In this document: positions 1,220 through 24,254 of the stretch, one piece after another | Layout: each line of letters begins with the position of its first letter | How positions within the stretch are numbered: position 1 is the first letter of the stretch | Sequence record: NC_042018.1 | DNA length: 64,000 bases | Strand: one strand, 5' to 3' | The notes under the pieces: generated by a model | Databases searched by the model: none | Seen by the model: the letters and a program-made list of their open reading frames with translations, nothing else | Told to the model about the DNA's origin: nothing | Program-made: the position numbers and the translations under genes

Positions 1220-2254
1220 ATGGCAAAACGTGATATTAATTACGCTGTAGAACGCATCACCAATTCCTTGTCGAATGCAATGAATGGCGGTACGTCGCAA
1301 GAACAACTTCTTGCTCTGTATAAGTCTCGACTGTTTGATGAAGAGCTGGTTGACAAAGATCGTCGCAATCAGGTTCTGATGGCAGTCAATAAAGAACTCG
1401 GCATGGACATCAAGATGCGTGATGTTAAGCAAGCCGACAACACCTTACTTGAACAAGTTCTGGCTAACAGCGGTGAAACCGGGCCTGAAATTGTACAAGA
1501 GCCAAATGACCTTCCTGCTCCTACAGCAGAGTTCATTCTGGCAAACCGGGAAGAGTTCAGTGTGGCTGAAGTTACCAAAGCCGGCATCGACCTCCACTCC
1601 CATCAGGGTACTCAAGTAGCAGACGCTACAGGCCCAGTTTCTGAAGTTAAATCCGCAAACACCGTAAACACTAATTCCACTGAGGATACCGACATGACTA
1701 CCAACGCTTCTAACTCTTACAACACCACTACCTCTACTTCTGCTCAGGCTGACAACAACCACACCGCAGAAGAAGCGCTGAACAAAGGCGCTGAAACCGT
1801 TGACGAAACGCTGAAAGCTGGCGCTGAACAGGCGAAAGAAAAAGCGCAGGAAACGGTTGAGAATCTGGCCGATGAGTCCTTCATGGATAAAGTCAATTCC
1901 ATCCGTCCTGAATACCTGGCTGCAGGCGCTGCTGTAATCGGTGCAGGGGCAACTATCCTGAACGCTGATGCAGTAAACGCTTACAACCTGGCCGGCGGCG
2001 CAGCAGGCGTAGCAGCAAGCTACTTCGGTGCTAAACATTTCCTGGGTGGCCGTGAAAACAACATCGTGACCAAATCCATCGCAGTATCTGCGGGTCTGGT
2101 TGCTGGTGCTGCACTGGCTCGTGCTGGTGACATGGTGCGTGACTACGTTATCGCTGGCGATGCCAACCAGGCTGCTGATGGCGAAACCGTGGTTACCATC
2201 AAACCGGTTCCGGCTCCGGCACCTGTAGTAACTGTTGAACAGCCACTGTTCTAA
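1220..2254 (+). CDS. hypothetical membrane-associated protein (Ala/Gly-rich C-terminal helices; possible internal start at 1694)
   Basis: ATG 1220 follows GGAG RBS; acidic helical region, then Gly/Ala-zipper hydrophobic segments. Confidence 0.8.
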   Translation: MAKRDINYAVERITNSLSNAMNGGTSQEQLLALYKSRLFDEELVDKDRRNQVLMAVNKELGMDIKMRDVKQADNTLLEQVLANSGETGPEIVQEPNDLPAPTAEFILANREEFSVAEVTKAGIDLHSHQGTQVADATGPVSEVKSANTVNTNSTEDTDMTTNASNSYNTTTSTSAQADNNHTAEEALNKGAETVDETLKAGAEQAKEKAQETVENLADESFMDKVNSIRPEYLAAGAAVIGAGATILNADAVNAYNLAGGAAGVAASYFGAKHFLGGRENNIVTKSIAVSAGLVAGAALARAGDMVRDYVIAGDANQAADGETVVTIKPVPAPAPVVTVEQPLF

Positions 2255-2261
2255 CAGGCGA

Positions 2262-2281
2262 GGGGGAACTTCGGTTCCCCC
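2262..2281 (+). terminator. intrinsic terminator
   Basis: GGGGGAAC-TTCG-GTTCCCCC followed by TTAGTTTT. Confidence 0.8.
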
Positions 2282-2343
2282 TTAGTTTTACCCCGACTAT
2301 TTAAAATTTATTAGATTGACGTTTTTCTTTAAAGGGTTGAATC

Positions 2344-2745
2344 ATGAAAAAGTTTATCGCTCCACTTGTTGCTGTTCTGCTGTCTGCTTGCGCTACCCAA
2401 CCGAAGCCTGCGGTAGAAGTTACCTATGAGTGTTCCAACTTCACCATGGGTCGTATTACTTCCCTGACTGAAGCGCCGGCACCGTCAAAGATTATTCCGG
2501 TCAAGCAGGTTGTCGTTCAGAACGATGAAGGTTACTTCATTCCGAAAGGTGGTGCGTTCGAACGTGACCGCTACTACTTCTGGCTCAATGAAGATGCCAG
2601 CACACAGAAAGCCGTCAGTGGCAAATTGGCCATGACTGAAAAAGATAGCAACTTTGTTATCTATGCTTTCCGTACTCCGTACAACGGCACCAACCCGCAG
2701 GACGTTGTGGGTTACATGGCGCTGTTGGACTGCGTGAAGAAATAA
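2344..2745 (+). CDS. putative lipoprotein
   Basis: MKKFIAPLVAVLLSA-C: signal peptide with lipobox. Confidence 0.8.
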   Translation: MKKFIAPLVAVLLSACATQPKPAVEVTYECSNFTMGRITSLTEAPAPSKIIPVKQVVVQNDEGYFIPKGGAFERDRYYFWLNEDASTQKAVSGKLAMTEKDSNFVIYAFRTPYNGTNPQDVVGYMALLDCVKK

Positions 2746-2751
2746 CGTAGC

Positions 2752-2986
2752 GGGCTGGGTATCCAGCCCCTATAGAAAAGTGAAAACCATTGCCATGGTT
2801 TTAACCCAACCGGTAAGAGTCCTTTGGACCGCCTCCTGTTCGAGGCCATTTTTCTATAGTCACCTCGTTAATGCCAACACATCTGATACGTAGATGCCTT
2901 AGGAATCCTTTCTGATTCCGGGAGAAAAAGGAATTTCTCCTTCTTTTTATTCCGTGGCCTTCCCGTAGTTATCTACGGGAGGGTCC
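2752..2986. ncRNA. candidate structured non-coding RNA (eight stems, multi-arm junction)
   Basis: 284-nt ORF-free gap containing 8 inverted repeats, including a perfect 10-bp closing stem 2770-2779/2850-2859. Strand and function unknown. Confidence 0.45.
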
Positions 2987-3029
2987 ATACTACAACAATC
3001 ATTTTTATTTTTTGTAAGGAAACCGTTTC

Positions 3030-3665
3030 ATGTCTACTCCTGCCGTTACGTCCATTGCCGAAGCCATCAGTGACGTTCTGTGGCCGGACAGTATTCTGAT
3101 TGACTTTGAATCGTGCAGCCTCCAGCCTGACAGTGCACTACTCAGCTTTGGGGCATTGGCCTTTAACCGCCATCAGGTTGCCAGTGTGTCGCATTACGCC
3201 AACATCCCTGAGATGATGATTAACATCAACCTCGACCTTACTACCCAGTTCCTGCAAGGGTTTGATTTTGATAAAGACACCGCTAAATGGTGGCGGGAAA
3301 AGAACGGACACAACATCAAAGGGTTGTACATTGATCGTGTGGAACTGATCGACATGGTGACCCAACTGAATACGCTGTTAGCGACGGTGAAGAAGAACTG
3401 CAAAGACGTGGCCTTCTTCTGTCGTCATCCGCATGCTGACTACGTGTGGTTACGTACCGTGTGTGAGCGCTTAGGGGTTCGCAATCCCATCAGCTACAAC
3501 CGCATCTATGATGTGGCGACCTATGTGTTCAGCCGTACTGATAACCTGCGTGGGGTTTATGAACTGGATACGCCGCGCAGCAGTTTCCACCATGCGTTCA
3601 ATGACTGCTACCGGGATGCATTACAGGTTGCTACTGTTAACGAAAGGAAGATACTCGATGTCTAA
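3030..3665 (+). CDS. DEDDh 3'-5' exonuclease (Rv2179c/DUF5051-like exoribonuclease)
   Basis: ILIDFES (DxE), HADY, HHAFNDCYRDA (H..D) motifs. Confidence 0.8.
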   Translation: MSTPAVTSIAEAISDVLWPDSILIDFESCSLQPDSALLSFGALAFNRHQVASVSHYANIPEMMININLDLTTQFLQGFDFDKDTAKWWREKNGHNIKGLYIDRVELIDMVTQLNTLLATVKKNCKDVAFFCRHPHADYVWLRTVCERLGVRNPISYNRIYDVATYVFSRTDNLRGVYELDTPRSSFHHAFNDCYRDALQVATVNERKILDV

Positions 3666-4116
3666 GATTGCATACATGACCTATCTGGTGAATGAGATAC
3701 CGATTGTGTTTCATTCTGCGCTTATGTCGCTGGCTAAGGAGCTCGTAGCATATGAGCAACAGCTTACGATGGATGTGCTGGGAAAACAGCGTCACATGGT
3801 TCCTGTGGACTCTGTGAAGGACTTCTTTATTGAAGACAGCGTGGTTGTGGTGGCCTTTAATGAGCGGGAAGAGTTACCGGTGGGGTTCTGTAGCTATTGG
3901 GCAGAACCGACCCAGGGTCGGCTGATTATCGACACGGTTTACGTTGCTCCTGCTTACCGTCAACAAGGCATTGCCAGGGCCATGTTAGCAGGACCCCTGG
4001 ACATGGGGTTCTCACTTATTGACATTCACGCCATGGCGAATAACCCCGCAGCGTTAAAACTGTATGCGTCATTAGGATTTAAACCCTATATTACTACGAT
4101 GACGAAAGTAAATTAA
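3658..4116 (+). CDS. GNAT family N-acetyltransferase
   Basis: VYVAPAYRQQGIARAML (acetyl-CoA motif A) and NPAALKLYASLGF. Start reset to ATG 3658, overlapping the upstream stop. Confidence 0.85.
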   Translation: MSKIAYMTYLVNEIPIVFHSALMSLAKELVAYEQQLTMDVLGKQRHMVPVDSVKDFFIEDSVVVVAFNEREELPVGFCSYWAEPTQGRLIIDTVYVAPAYRQQGIARAMLAGPLDMGFSLIDIHAMANNPAALKLYASLGFKPYITTMTKVN

Positions 4117-9244: not shown

Positions 9245-10726
9245 ATGGAAACCAGCATCAAGTTTAGTGAAATGCCGAAACTCGACTCTATCACTGCGGA
9301 TACCCTTATCCCAGTTGTAGGAACAGGGGAAGATGGCCAGCCTGCTAACTTCAGTATTAAGGGGTCAACCCTGTTGGCGTTTGTGGGAGAACTCGCGACG
9401 CCTGTTGGGTCAGCTAATCAACGTCCTTTCCAGGAGTGGCTGTCTCAGCTAGAACGTCGTACTACCTATGACTTCCGTCCCGTTCCAGTAATGACCAATC
9501 CTCCAGTGACGTCTCTGGTGAAATCCCAAGGGGTATCGGGTGTGTCAGTCGTTAACGGTGGCGCGGGTTATAAAGTCGGCGACAACTTGACCGTGGATGG
9601 CGGTGAGTTCGGCGTAGCTGCACGTCTGCGTGTAACGTCTGTGGATGGCGACGGTAAGATTTTGGCAGTCGCGGTACAGCTGACCGGCACGTATATTACC
9701 AAACCTGTTAACCCAGTTTCAACAACGGATGATTCTACCGGCACAGGGGCAACCTTTAACCTGACGTGGAACCCAGGCGTAGGGTCTACTATCTATAACG
9801 GTAAGACCTGGAACCGTACTGATGAAACCCTGTTTAAGTATCTGGGTTACAACATCAAGGACACCTCTTCAGGTTATCGCGGTAACGGTATCGGTAATGG
9901 TACGCAGTGTGTAATTGAATTCTTCTGTGATGCCGACGCCATTGACTTCCGCTTCATTGGCGGTAATGCTCAGTACGACCTTTACGTCGACGGACAGCGT
10001 ATCAGTGATAAACCAATTCAAACGGATTCATCCGGTGCGCCCTACATCTATAATGTCACTTGGCCGACTTCTGTGCCACGTCATTATAAACTGATGGGTA
10101 TTAACACCGGGTTTGGTGGTATCATCACTGCCCAACAGTATACTGTATGGCATCCAGGTCCACGTCGTCGTCCATTAATTTGGCAGATGGGTGACTCTTA
10201 CACCTACGGTACTGGTGCAACCCAAATCTCATTCAACGATCTCAAAGTGATGGCAGACATTCTGGGGTTTGATTCCATTGCGGACGGGATTGGAGGTAAG
10301 GGGTGGACGTCAACCGATTCCACTATTCCTCAACAGCGTGTGGCTGACAAGCTCGCTATCCTCAACGATACGCCAGAGTATGTCTTCCTCTCCCTGGGCT
10401 ATAACGACGCCGCAGCGGGCCGTTTAGAAGTACTGGAGACCAACTTCCGGGCAACGATTGCGAAGCTCAATGAAGTGGTGCCTAATGCCAAGGTTGTGGT
10501 AATTGGTCCGGCAACTCCAATGGGATCAACCAGCAAGATTACCGACATCCGTGCATCCCTTATCAAACTCAGTGCTGAATTCAACCTGATGTTTGTGGAT
10601 GTGGATAACTGGGTTAGTGCGGCGAATGCCAAGCTGTATACCCTGAGTGATAACACCCACCCTAACGACGCCGGGTATATCTACCGTGGTGTACGTTTAG
10701 CTCAAGCATTGGCGAGTCGTATCTAG
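9245..10726 (+). CDS. tail-associated SGNH/GDSL esterase (putative O-acetyl esterase tailspike)
   Basis: Blocks GDSY, GIGG, LGYND and DNTHP (DxxH); N-terminal IKFSEMP anchor-like motif and Gly-rich beta modules. Confidence 0.8.
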   Translation: METSIKFSEMPKLDSITADTLIPVVGTGEDGQPANFSIKGSTLLAFVGELATPVGSANQRPFQEWLSQLERRTTYDFRPVPVMTNPPVTSLVKSQGVSGVSVVNGGAGYKVGDNLTVDGGEFGVAARLRVTSVDGDGKILAVAVQLTGTYITKPVNPVSTTDDSTGTGATFNLTWNPGVGSTIYNGKTWNRTDETLFKYLGYNIKDTSSGYRGNGIGNGTQCVIEFFCDADAIDFRFIGGNAQYDLYVDGQRISDKPIQTDSSGAPYIYNVTWPTSVPRHYKLMGINTGFGGIITAQQYTVWHPGPRRRPLIWQMGDSYTYGTGATQISFNDLKVMADILGFDSIADGIGGKGWTSTDSTIPQQRVADKLAILNDTPEYVFLSLGYNDAAAGRLEVLETNFRATIAKLNEVVPNAKVVVIGPATPMGSTSKITDIRASLIKLSAEFNLMFVDVDNWVSAANAKLYTLSDNTHPNDAGYIYRGVRLAQALASRI

Positions 10727-10731
10727 CGTAC

Positions 10732-10739
10732 ATGCTATG
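10732..10739 (+). promoter_or_regulatory. putative late promoter (TATG)
   Basis: ATGCTATG, same as the copy at 9214. Confidence 0.45.
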
Positions 10740-10767
10740 CTCTATACAACCTCACTCTGGTGTCACT

Positions 10768-11646
10768 ATGGATAATACGTTTTCGGTCGAGTCTCGTGAC
10801 ATTGATTGTCAGCTTGACCACGCGTCACGCATCGCACAAGGAATGTGCGATACTGTCAATGGCAGTGAAGGGCTCACGGATGCCCAACTGTACCTGCACG
10901 GTATTCTGTTTGCTCATGGCATTTTACCGAACCGGGTAGAGGGCAACGAAAGTTTAATCGTGGGCTCTCTGCTCAATGAGTTCAGTAAGTTCTTTGACAT
11001 GATCTCCGATATCTCTAACGGGCTGGGCAAGTTCTTCTCAGGCGATGCGTTAACCAATGAGTTGCTGAAATCATCAAAAGCCATTGAAAGCGCCGTGACC
11101 GGTATCAAGAAGTTAGAAGGTCAACAGCAACTTAAGTCTTCGCATCAAAGTGATTTGAATAAACTGTTTCGTCGTTTCATTAATGACATGGAAGGCAACA
11201 TCAAGAAACAGGCGAAGATTTGTGTGTCCATGGAAAAGGTCGATAAAAACGTCACGGGTAACTGGAAGTACCACGCGATGGTCATGAAGCAAAGTTCCTA
11301 CCATGAAGAACTGTTGGATTGGGCAGAGAACCTGGGAACGGTATCGTCAGTGTCCGAAGCCAGTCGTATCCTTAGCAGACTCCAGTCGGTTATTAAAAAC
11401 ATGACGGGACAAATTCGGGATGCAAATAAAGCGGCACAAGACCTGGAACATAACCGTCGTCTCTTTCTGCAAGGGAAGCGGATTGAGAACAACAAAGAGA
11501 ACAAAAAGAACTTAGCACTGGCTCACACCATGACCGTTTACATGATTGACTTAATCAAGTTAACGAAGCAGGACATTGAGCTTAAGATGAAATTCATCAG
11601 TGCTTGTACCTCGCACTTAAAACCAGGTTGCTTCCAGAAGGCATAA
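10768..11646 (+). CDS. putative phiKZ-type internal head protein (paralog of 40803-41729)
   Basis: LTDAQLYLHGILFAHGILP..EGNE propeptide-like motif shared with 40803; helical; follows the late motif. Confidence 0.6.
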   Translation: MDNTFSVESRDIDCQLDHASRIAQGMCDTVNGSEGLTDAQLYLHGILFAHGILPNRVEGNESLIVGSLLNEFSKFFDMISDISNGLGKFFSGDALTNELLKSSKAIESAVTGIKKLEGQQQLKSSHQSDLNKLFRRFINDMEGNIKKQAKICVSMEKVDKNVTGNWKYHAMVMKQSSYHEELLDWAENLGTVSSVSEASRILSRLQSVIKNMTGQIRDANKAAQDLEHNRRLFLQGKRIENNKENKKNLALAHTMTVYMIDLIKLTKQDIELKMKFISACTSHLKPGCFQKA

Positions 11647-17771: not shown

Positions 17772-18284
17772 ATGCCACATTTCTTAGGGGCGGATTTTCA
17801 TCTGTGTGACCCCAGTTCCCTCAAATACCGAAAACAGTTTCCCTCTCTGGGGTATCACGACGAATACGTCTGCGATGTGGTCTTGGCCAAACTTCGCCCT
17901 AATGACCTGCTCACCATGGTAGGAGACTGCCTGGTGGGAAAGGGAGCCATTGAGCTGATTAAAAAGTTTCCCTGCCGTAAGCGCCTGATTGCAGGCAACC
18001 ATGAATTTGAGAAAGGCATTAACTTCGCCGATTTAGTAGGAGTCGTGGATGAGATTCACTCATCGTACAAATGGCGAGGCCGTTTCAATATTGTCCATAT
18101 TCCGCCGCATCCTGCCCATCTTCGTGGTAAGACTATTATTCATGGGCATCTTCACGAAGTCATTATACCTGATCCTCGTTTCATTAACGTCTCGTTAGAA
18201 GCGACAGGGTATCGTCTGGTACAGGCCGAAGAGATTATTACCGGCGAGTATCGTTCTTATCGTATTCCGGAGGTTTGCACGTGA
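17772..18284 (+). CDS. calcineurin-like metallophosphoesterase
   Basis: ADFHL (DxH), VGD, AGNHE (GNH), H, IHGHLH (GHxH). Confidence 0.9.
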   Translation: MPHFLGADFHLCDPSSLKYRKQFPSLGYHDEYVCDVVLAKLRPNDLLTMVGDCLVGKGAIELIKKFPCRKRLIAGNHEFEKGINFADLVGVVDEIHSSYKWRGRFNIVHIPPHPAHLRGKTIIHGHLHEVIIPDPRFINVSLEATGYRLVQAEEIITGEYRSYRIPEVCT

Positions 18285-23864: not shown

Positions 23865-24254
23865 ATGAAAAACCATGGCATTATCCGTCGTACTCCTGAA
23901 AACAGTCTCCATACGTTCCTGGTGAAGTTGGACGCGGACTGTGTCCCTGAAGGTGATAACCGTCAAATCTTTGCGGTAATCGACCGTCAGTTTCAAACGC
24001 TTGGGACAGCGCGTATTAAAGAACGTCGACACGGTCAATATGTGTTTGAGATGGTTATCCCCAATAAAGCCACAGCCGCCGCGTTGTATTCGTTAACCGA
24101 TAAAGAAAACCAATCTGCGGGGAACATTTGGGGGCACAGCAACCGACGTTGCCAGGATATCTTCTGTATTGAATTGGGTATCATGAGCCAGGCTAACAAT
24201 CCGGAAAGTTTTGGTTATCGGGAGTATAATCCGATTTACCGTAACCTGCACTAA
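23865..24254 (+). CDS. hypothetical protein
   Basis: 129 aa, RBS AGGGA. Confidence 0.75.
   Translation: MKNHGIIRRTPENSLHTFLVKLDADCVPEGDNRQIFAVIDRQFQTLGTARIKERRHGQYVFEMVIPNKATAAALYSLTDKENQSAGNIWGHSNRRCQDIFCIELGIMSQANNPESFGYREYNPIYRNLH

Follow-up and report, generated by a model that had tools for sequence, protein, structure and literature searches.

What does the gap between genes gp123 and gp124 of Erwinia phage vB_EamM_RisingSun encode? RisingSun is a 235-kb jumbo phage and a distant relative of the phiKZ-like phages (PMC6034870). The window analysed here is a stretch of 64,000 nucleotides (nt) that corresponds to positions 124001–188000 of the RisingSun genome (NC_042018.1), and coordinates below refer to the window unless stated otherwise. 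The gap occupies positions 2746–3029 (284 nt), with the gp123 stop codon at 2743–2745 and the gp124 start at 3030, and no open reading frame (ORF) lies between the two. An initial annotation, made from the letters alone, had pointed to eight stems in this ORF-free segment, in a genome whose other gaps carry a single hairpin, and had proposed a non-coding RNA with a defined structure, other than a canonical tRNA. Its description of the locus was accurate: each of the eight stems can be found in the sequence, none of them more than one base from its stated position, the segment is indeed free of ORFs between the gp123 stop and the gp124 start, and the usual gap of this genome consists of one hairpin, a spacer, a T-rich tract, and a ribosome site. 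What is unusual about the gp123/gp124 gap lies ahead of that arrangement. There, positions 2752–2951 encode a conserved structured non-coding RNA of approximately 200 nt on the + strand. The features of the gap and of its two flanking genes are the following:

2344–2745, + strand: gp123, a Cor-like lipoprotein gene (phrog_1119, E 9e-12; signal peptide with a lipobox in the translation)
2752–2769, + strand: H1, a 7-bp G+C-rich hairpin abutting the junction (2752–2758 with 2763–2769), found in all relatives
2770–2859, + strand: four-way junction of 90 nt, into whose shape all homologues fold individually
2770–2782 with 2847–2859, + strand: P1, the closing stem, 13 bp including one G·U pair
2783–2802, + strand: P2 arm (stem 2783–2790/2795–2802)
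2803–2818, + strand: joining strand from P2 to P3
2819–2829, + strand: P3 arm (stem 2819–2822/2826–2829)
2831–2846, + strand: P4 arm (stem 2831–2835/2842–2846)
2860–2901, + strand: variable linker, including a non-conserved hairpin at 2880–2896 (stem 2880–2884/2892–2896)
2902–2919, + strand: H5, a 6-bp hairpin adjoining the terminator (stem 2902–2907/2914–2919)
2920–2951, + strand: T, an intrinsic terminator matched by a terminator scan, with an 8-bp stem (2920–2927 with 2934–2941) and then a U-run
2953–2988, + strand: H7, a long hairpin (stem 2956–2968/2973–2986), a generic gene-junction signal outside the conserved core
3002–3020, + strand: T-rich tract (3002–3013) and ribosome binding site (3016–3020) of gp124, nearly invariant in relatives
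3030–3665, + strand: gp124, a DEDDh exonuclease gene (Rv2179c-like; PF16473, E 4e-13)

The RNA starts 6 nt after the gp123 stop codon and consists, from 5′ to 3′, of H1, the four-way junction (P1–P4), the variable linker, H5, and the intrinsic terminator T with its U-run. The strands that connect the helices of the junction measure 0, 16, 1, and 0 nt, and the arm loops vary between 2 and 6 nt. The closing stem had been described as a 10-bp helix (2770–2779/2850–2859); those pairs exist, and the true length of the helix is 13 bp. The eight stems do not all belong to one structured unit: two of them were rejected as core stems. One of them, the 2880–2896 hairpin, sits in a linker of varying length and sequence and is broken by a substitution in a near-identical metagenomic contig (L017). 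The other, H7 (2956–2986), shows covariation among members of the RisingSun group, but the most distant relative (L027) lacks it and has the T-rich tract and ribosome site directly after the terminator. We read H7 as part of the generic junction signal of this genome and not of the RNA core.

All genes neighbouring the RNA are on the + strand. The 3′ end of gp124 overlaps the start of gp125, a GNAT acetyltransferase gene, and an Acb1-family enzyme and an AcrVA2-like protein are encoded near the gap. In our reading, the genes clustered around the element (Acb1, the Cor-like lipoprotein, the exonuclease, the GNAT protein, and the AcrVA2-like protein) are counter-defence genes. The gp123 product matches the Cor superinfection-exclusion family. 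The GNAT gene is annotated from an earlier start, with a longer gp124 overlap, in the RisingSun RefSeq record (window 3628–4116) than in Joad (L002 5358–5816). Joad also carries an HNH endonuclease gene between its gp121 and gp122 homologues (L002 1977–2909), which RisingSun lacks (~1119–1189).

The fold of the gap is far stronger than that of shuffled sequence, a check that the initial annotation had suggested: its minimum free energy is −102 kcal/mol versus −67.9 ± 5.0 kcal/mol in 200 dinucleotide shuffles (z −6.85). The reverse strand of the gap gives a z of −7.18. When 2936 windows of 240 nt were ranked genome-wide after GC correction, those over the element were placed between 19th and 51st; the element is therefore in the top 1–2 per cent of the genome by folding and is not its most structured place. 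The best-folding 240 nt of the genome (genome positions 10646–10885; GC-corrected z −5.2) lie outside the studied window, in a 614-nt non-coding region (genome positions 10661–11274; L007 262–875) with direct repeats rich in purines and neither a tRNA nor an obvious gene.

The gap is nearly identical to that of RisingSun in Joad and in the metagenomic contig L017. A protein search with the exonuclease yielded four diverged lineages (L010, L011, L012–L014, and L015; 62–78 per cent identity), all of which keep the RisingSun gene order and have gaps of 262–267 nt. L027 came from a profile search; its exonuclease is 39 per cent identical, and its 285-nt gap is situated between a gp123 homologue (34 per cent identity) and the exonuclease gene, with a GNAT gene following. 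The synteny of the RNA and the exonuclease gene is kept in all six of the six lineages that carry the RNA. By contrast with these, other exonuclease homologues (L025, L029, L031, and Klebsiella phage Miami) are preceded by short gaps with no element and have no gp123 homologue. Searches of larger collections extended this set very little: the IMG/VR protein search found no further relatives, the IMG/VR search with two DNA patterns returned nothing or chance matches that the covariance model rejected, the JGI metagenome scan recovered only one near-identical contig (L017), and the species-genome scan gave two chance matches, both rejected by the covariance model. A DNA search and two models (R1 and R2) applied to whole genomes counted a single copy each in RisingSun and Joad and zero in Miami. 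A possible second RisingSun copy, suggested by an 11-mer repeat at genome position 209690, was dismissed: the repeat is within a gene and matches by chance.

Folded separately, the sequences from L010, L011, L012, L015, and L027 give the same plan as RisingSun, and the pairing is maintained by compensatory changes, so that the comparison with relatives proposed in the initial annotation came out in favour of the element. Because there are only six independent lineages, the covariation statistics are modest: 16 of the 53 pairs in an RNAalifold consensus have changes on both sides, and in a model-based alignment of H1 and the junction 96 per cent of cells are paired and 7 pairs show double changes. 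That level of covariation was reached by none of 500 shuffles, and slid partners pair in only 32–54 per cent of cells. Among the individual stems, P1 covaries at 8 of its 13 pairs; two pairs of H1 have changes on both sides (100 per cent of cells paired), as do four of the eight pairs of T (89.6 per cent paired). In L027, each strand of P1 is identical to its RisingSun counterpart at only 7 of 13 positions, yet the two strands pair with each other at 12 of 13. The covariance model also detects the junction in L027 (E 1e-5).

The remaining helices barely vary, and P2–P4 and H5 are thus supported by conservation rather than covariation. The sequence of the H5 stem is invariant in the RisingSun group and the stem is one pair shorter in L027; in every relative of the RisingSun group, H5 starts exactly 42 nt ahead of the U-run. 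Both MAFFT and model-based alignments misplace some short arms. The cells of H5, P3, and P4 that appear unpaired in the alignments are alignment errors, since the per-sequence folds show these arms paired, H5 fully so in every fold.

Sequence conservation follows the same modular plan. DNA identity to the diverged relatives is 78–84 per cent in the junction, 55–71 per cent in the flanking genes, and 26–45 per cent in the linker, the length of which ranges from 18 to 44 nt among homologues. Nucleotide conservation starts exactly at H1, the end of gp123 not being conserved. The unpaired bases just ahead of P3 are nearly invariant, and those 3′ of P1 are not conserved. In metatranscriptome contigs of a co-occurring strain, there is one difference in positions 2763–3050 versus 27 expected from the flanks (P ~1e-11), a pattern that recent recombination, as an alternative to purifying selection, could also have caused. 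To judge from these alignments, the element is under stronger sequence constraint than the neighbouring genes. The gp123 gene itself diverges fast (~55 per cent DNA identity among relatives), which contrasts with the RNA element located 3′ of it. At least two RisingSun-like strains, up to 10 per cent divergent in gp123, co-occur in the food-fermentation metatranscriptome libraries (window 1900–3900, runs X1–X7), and parts of the same region (window 1900–3900) are also found in runs from root, groundwater, and wastewater samples.

Is the conserved structure an RNA, and does it belong to a known class? Paired positions include 23 G·U cells and no A·C cells. The tolerance of G·U pairs and the absence of A·C, together with a U-run on the + strand only and neighbouring genes that are all on the + strand, indicate an RNA made from the + strand and not a DNA structure. 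A G+C-containing hairpin directly before a U-run, as in an intrinsic terminator, is present at T on this strand in all relatives. No ORF in the gap is conserved: those that exist differ in frame, place, and length among relatives. ARAGORN predicted no tRNA or tmRNA genes in the window, and the Rfam tRNA and tmRNA models had no match at E values up to 10. The Rfam 15 riboswitch, leader, and ribozyme models, searched to the same E limit, gave no relevant match in the window region or at the loci of five relatives, and the annotations of RisingSun and Joad contain nothing equivalent to the element. The initial proposal, a structured RNA that codes for no protein and differs from a canonical tRNA, was thus borne out by compensatory changes in relatives and by the lack of a conserved ORF and of ARAGORN or Rfam matches. 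On the present comparisons, we take the element to represent a phage RNA family that is new and confined to one lineage, though familiar in its general kind. Two smaller candidate motifs were discarded: a CsrA-type GGA loop motif in the terminator, which is conserved in the RisingSun group and absent in L027, and a pseudoknot that would pair the terminator loop with bases 3′ of the U-run, which by eye is not conserved.

To place the RNA in a transcript, we mapped promoter-like motifs by k-mer enrichment and a weight matrix. One motif, composed of a T-rich tract, a spacer, and a conserved octamer, occurs at approximately 28 sites genome-wide, 27 of them on the + strand and a single weak one on the − strand. 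It matches predicted early promoters of the Pseudomonas phages EL, phiKZ, 201phi2-1, and OBP (PMC7058600). Three of its sites are relevant here:

465–502, + strand: predicted early promoter ahead of gp121 (core octamer 487–494; score 29.6), its position kept in L010, L011, and L012
1117–1154, + strand: predicted early promoter ahead of gp122 (core 1139–1146; score 21.4), its position kept in relatives with scores of 32–34
4065–4102, + strand: predicted early promoter at the gp125 end (core 4087–4094; score 31.1), kept in L010, L011, L012, and L015

The gp122 promoter is the nearest of its class upstream of the element. A position-weight scan found no EL/phiKZ-type early promoter in the gap, where all scores are below 0; a promoter of another class there could go unrecognised. 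With no early promoter in the gap and the nearest ones preceding gp121 and gp122, an early gp121/gp122–gp123 transcript probably has the element as its 3′ end. The simplest reading is that T sits mid-way in a promoter-to-promoter unit that also holds gp124 and gp125. In L027, 28 extra nt between H1 and the junction contain a weak look-alike of the promoter core, which makes independent transcription possible in that relative. In L030, whose exonuclease is 40 per cent identical, a hairpin and a good early promoter precede the exonuclease gene instead of the RNA (L030 1–100), suggesting that the exonuclease gene is an early gene in this phage group. Contigs assembled from RNA-labelled food-fermentation libraries cover the genes and the gap at flat depth, with DNA carry-over possible. 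Position 2939 is where one contig of X1, a run presumed to be RNA, stops, and depth is lower past that point, in a kind of data in which contigs cannot prove RNA ends; contigs of other RNA-labelled runs bridge the terminator site.

The explanation that we favour, in which our confidence is about evenly balanced, is that the element is a structured RNA borne on a 3′ untranslated region (3′-UTR) and ending at T, with a junction read by a protein and a terminator that limits read-through into gp124–gp125. Transcription would start at the early promoters at 487 and 1139, and the element would be the tail of the gp121/gp122–gp123 message. Some or all of these transcripts would stop at T, short of the exonuclease and acetyltransferase genes, and the RNA would either stay on the message or be cut off as a stable species of approximately 200 nt. 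A protein of the phage or the host would bind the junction and its arms at their invariant sequences, and T would at the same time set the amount of transcription entering gp124–gp125. The analysis shows the structure with its conservation and strand, the lack of coding potential, and the positions of the promoters; it is discrete accumulation, protein binding, and an effect on the downstream genes that we infer here. The main rival, somewhat unlikely in our view, is a cis-acting leader or attenuator for gp124–gp125, a role that the initial annotation had also raised; its junction would be read by a protein, the polymerase (as in the put RNA of phage HK022), or a small molecule and would decide the passage of T. 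Terminator-type leaders have the same order of junction, linker, terminator, and gene. Between T and gp124 there is no early promoter, and the next is found only at the gp125 end, likewise in relatives, so that read-through is the simplest route to early gp124–gp125 expression; the contigs from RNA-labelled libraries bridge T, although they may contain DNA. Against a leader, no conserved pairing competes with T; in nascent folds its 5′ strand has different partners from one homologue to the next, and T forms in every homologue with or without P1 (the latter with P1 forbidden in folding). P1 is a stable 13-bp helix, unlike the short switching helices of riboswitches, and this stability, along with the lack of a conserved antiterminator pairing, makes a classical riboswitch unlikely. 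Nor does any known riboswitch or leader model match, the conserved stretch 3′ of H7 may hold a promoter of a different class, and the L030 exonuclease gene is driven directly from its predicted early promoter.

The other alternatives fit the conservation pattern or the strand less well. The locus could be a passive pile of terminator and stabiliser hairpins that shield the gp123 message from 3′ exonucleases and have no further specific function: hairpins between genes are routine in this genome, H1 comes directly after the stop codon, and T is a standard terminator. We consider this improbable, because simple stabilisers have no need of a four-way junction, the junction sequence (including the arms and the unpaired bases ahead of P3) is more conserved than the neighbouring genes, and the linker varies freely while the modules do not. 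A DNA element, such as a replication origin, a recombination site, or a cruciform, would also be compatible with inverted repeats, which pair in DNA too, and with the reverse strand folding equally well, and a self-cleaving ribozyme that processes the operon transcript would be compatible with a multi-way junction, typical of several small ribozymes. The many G·U pairs without A·C, the directionality of a terminator with a U-run, and the absence of any Rfam ribozyme match in any relative make this pair of possibilities very improbable. The initial annotation had also suggested a tRNA mimic or decoy, which would draw off an anticodon nuclease or some other defence aimed at tRNAs. The idea is invited by the four-way junction and its surroundings, which are rich in genes of counter-defence (Acb1 and AcrVA2-like), and RisingSun has no tRNA genes, either by ARAGORN on the window or according to its genome description (PMC6034870). 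The idea is nonetheless hardly credible: ARAGORN and the Rfam tRNA models report nothing, even at E 10; the 13-bp closing stem and spacings of 0, 16, 1, and 0 nt do not fit the helix lengths and joining strands of a cloverleaf; a conserved 7-nt loop is absent from all arms, the P3 and P4 loops varying in length and sequence within the 2–6 nt range; and the bases 3′ of P1 are not conserved. The analysis gave no support to a specific function as a protein sponge, another of the roles first suggested.

Comparison with known RNAs shows both likenesses and differences. A review mentions non-coding RNAs expressed by phiKZ without giving a structure or family (PMC13282480), and the element resembles these in being a non-coding RNA of a related jumbo phage. 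It resembles a SAM-I terminator-type riboswitch in having a four-way junction of ~90 nt, a linker, and a terminator before a gene, and it differs in its 13-bp closing helix, the lack of any Rfam riboswitch match, and the lack of a conserved antiterminator. It shares with a tRNA a single meeting point of four helices and a last arm that joins the closing stem directly, whereas a tRNA has a 7-bp acceptor stem, 7-nt anticodon and T loops, and a conserved 3′ end, in place of the 13-bp stem and 2–6-nt loops found here. Enterobacterial 3′-UTR-derived small RNAs (sRNAs) of the CpxQ, SroC, and RaiZ type are mostly 50–100 nt long, have a single-stranded seed, and depend on Hfq or ProQ. Like them, the element starts just past a stop codon, has no separate promoter that could be recognised, and uses the intrinsic terminator of its parent message; unlike them, it is ~200 nt long, is dominated by a four-way junction, and is phage-encoded. 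The put element of phage HK022 consists of two hairpins just after a promoter. Like put and the EAR antitermination RNA of Bacillus, the RisingSun element is a cis-encoded folded RNA within an operon, upstream of a terminator; it shares neither sequence nor shape with put, and the early genes of this phage are probably transcribed by a polymerase that the phage itself encodes.

Phages related to phiKZ transcribe their own genomes with their own polymerases, and to our knowledge little is known about control at the RNA level in this group. The element is an unannotated, modular, covariation-backed structure at a defined point of an early operon, beside counter-defence genes. Its constraint, its clear modular structure, and its defined position in the operon make it a concrete, small, and mutable target. 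It raises the questions of how such phages end, process, or meter their early transcripts, whether they use RNAs against host factors, and which proteins read this RNA. Only tentatively do we entertain the possibility that the element founds a new class of regulatory RNAs in jumbo phages: a four-way-junction RNA, made early within the counter-defence gene cluster, that binds a protein or ligand and would either titrate a host factor or defence sensor or gate the exonuclease–acetyltransferase pair by the state of the infected cell. The covariance model of the element can be used to annotate relatives.

A separate observation concerns the gaps of this genome in general. A junction signal recurs before many genes and consists of a hairpin, a spacer of 8–15 nt, a T tract interrupted by one A, and a ribosome site. 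Examples are found at window positions 3002–3020 and at genome positions 18150–18185, 23920–23948, 168480–168516, and 202560–202598. This signal could be a terminator–reinitiation signal or a second promoter class.
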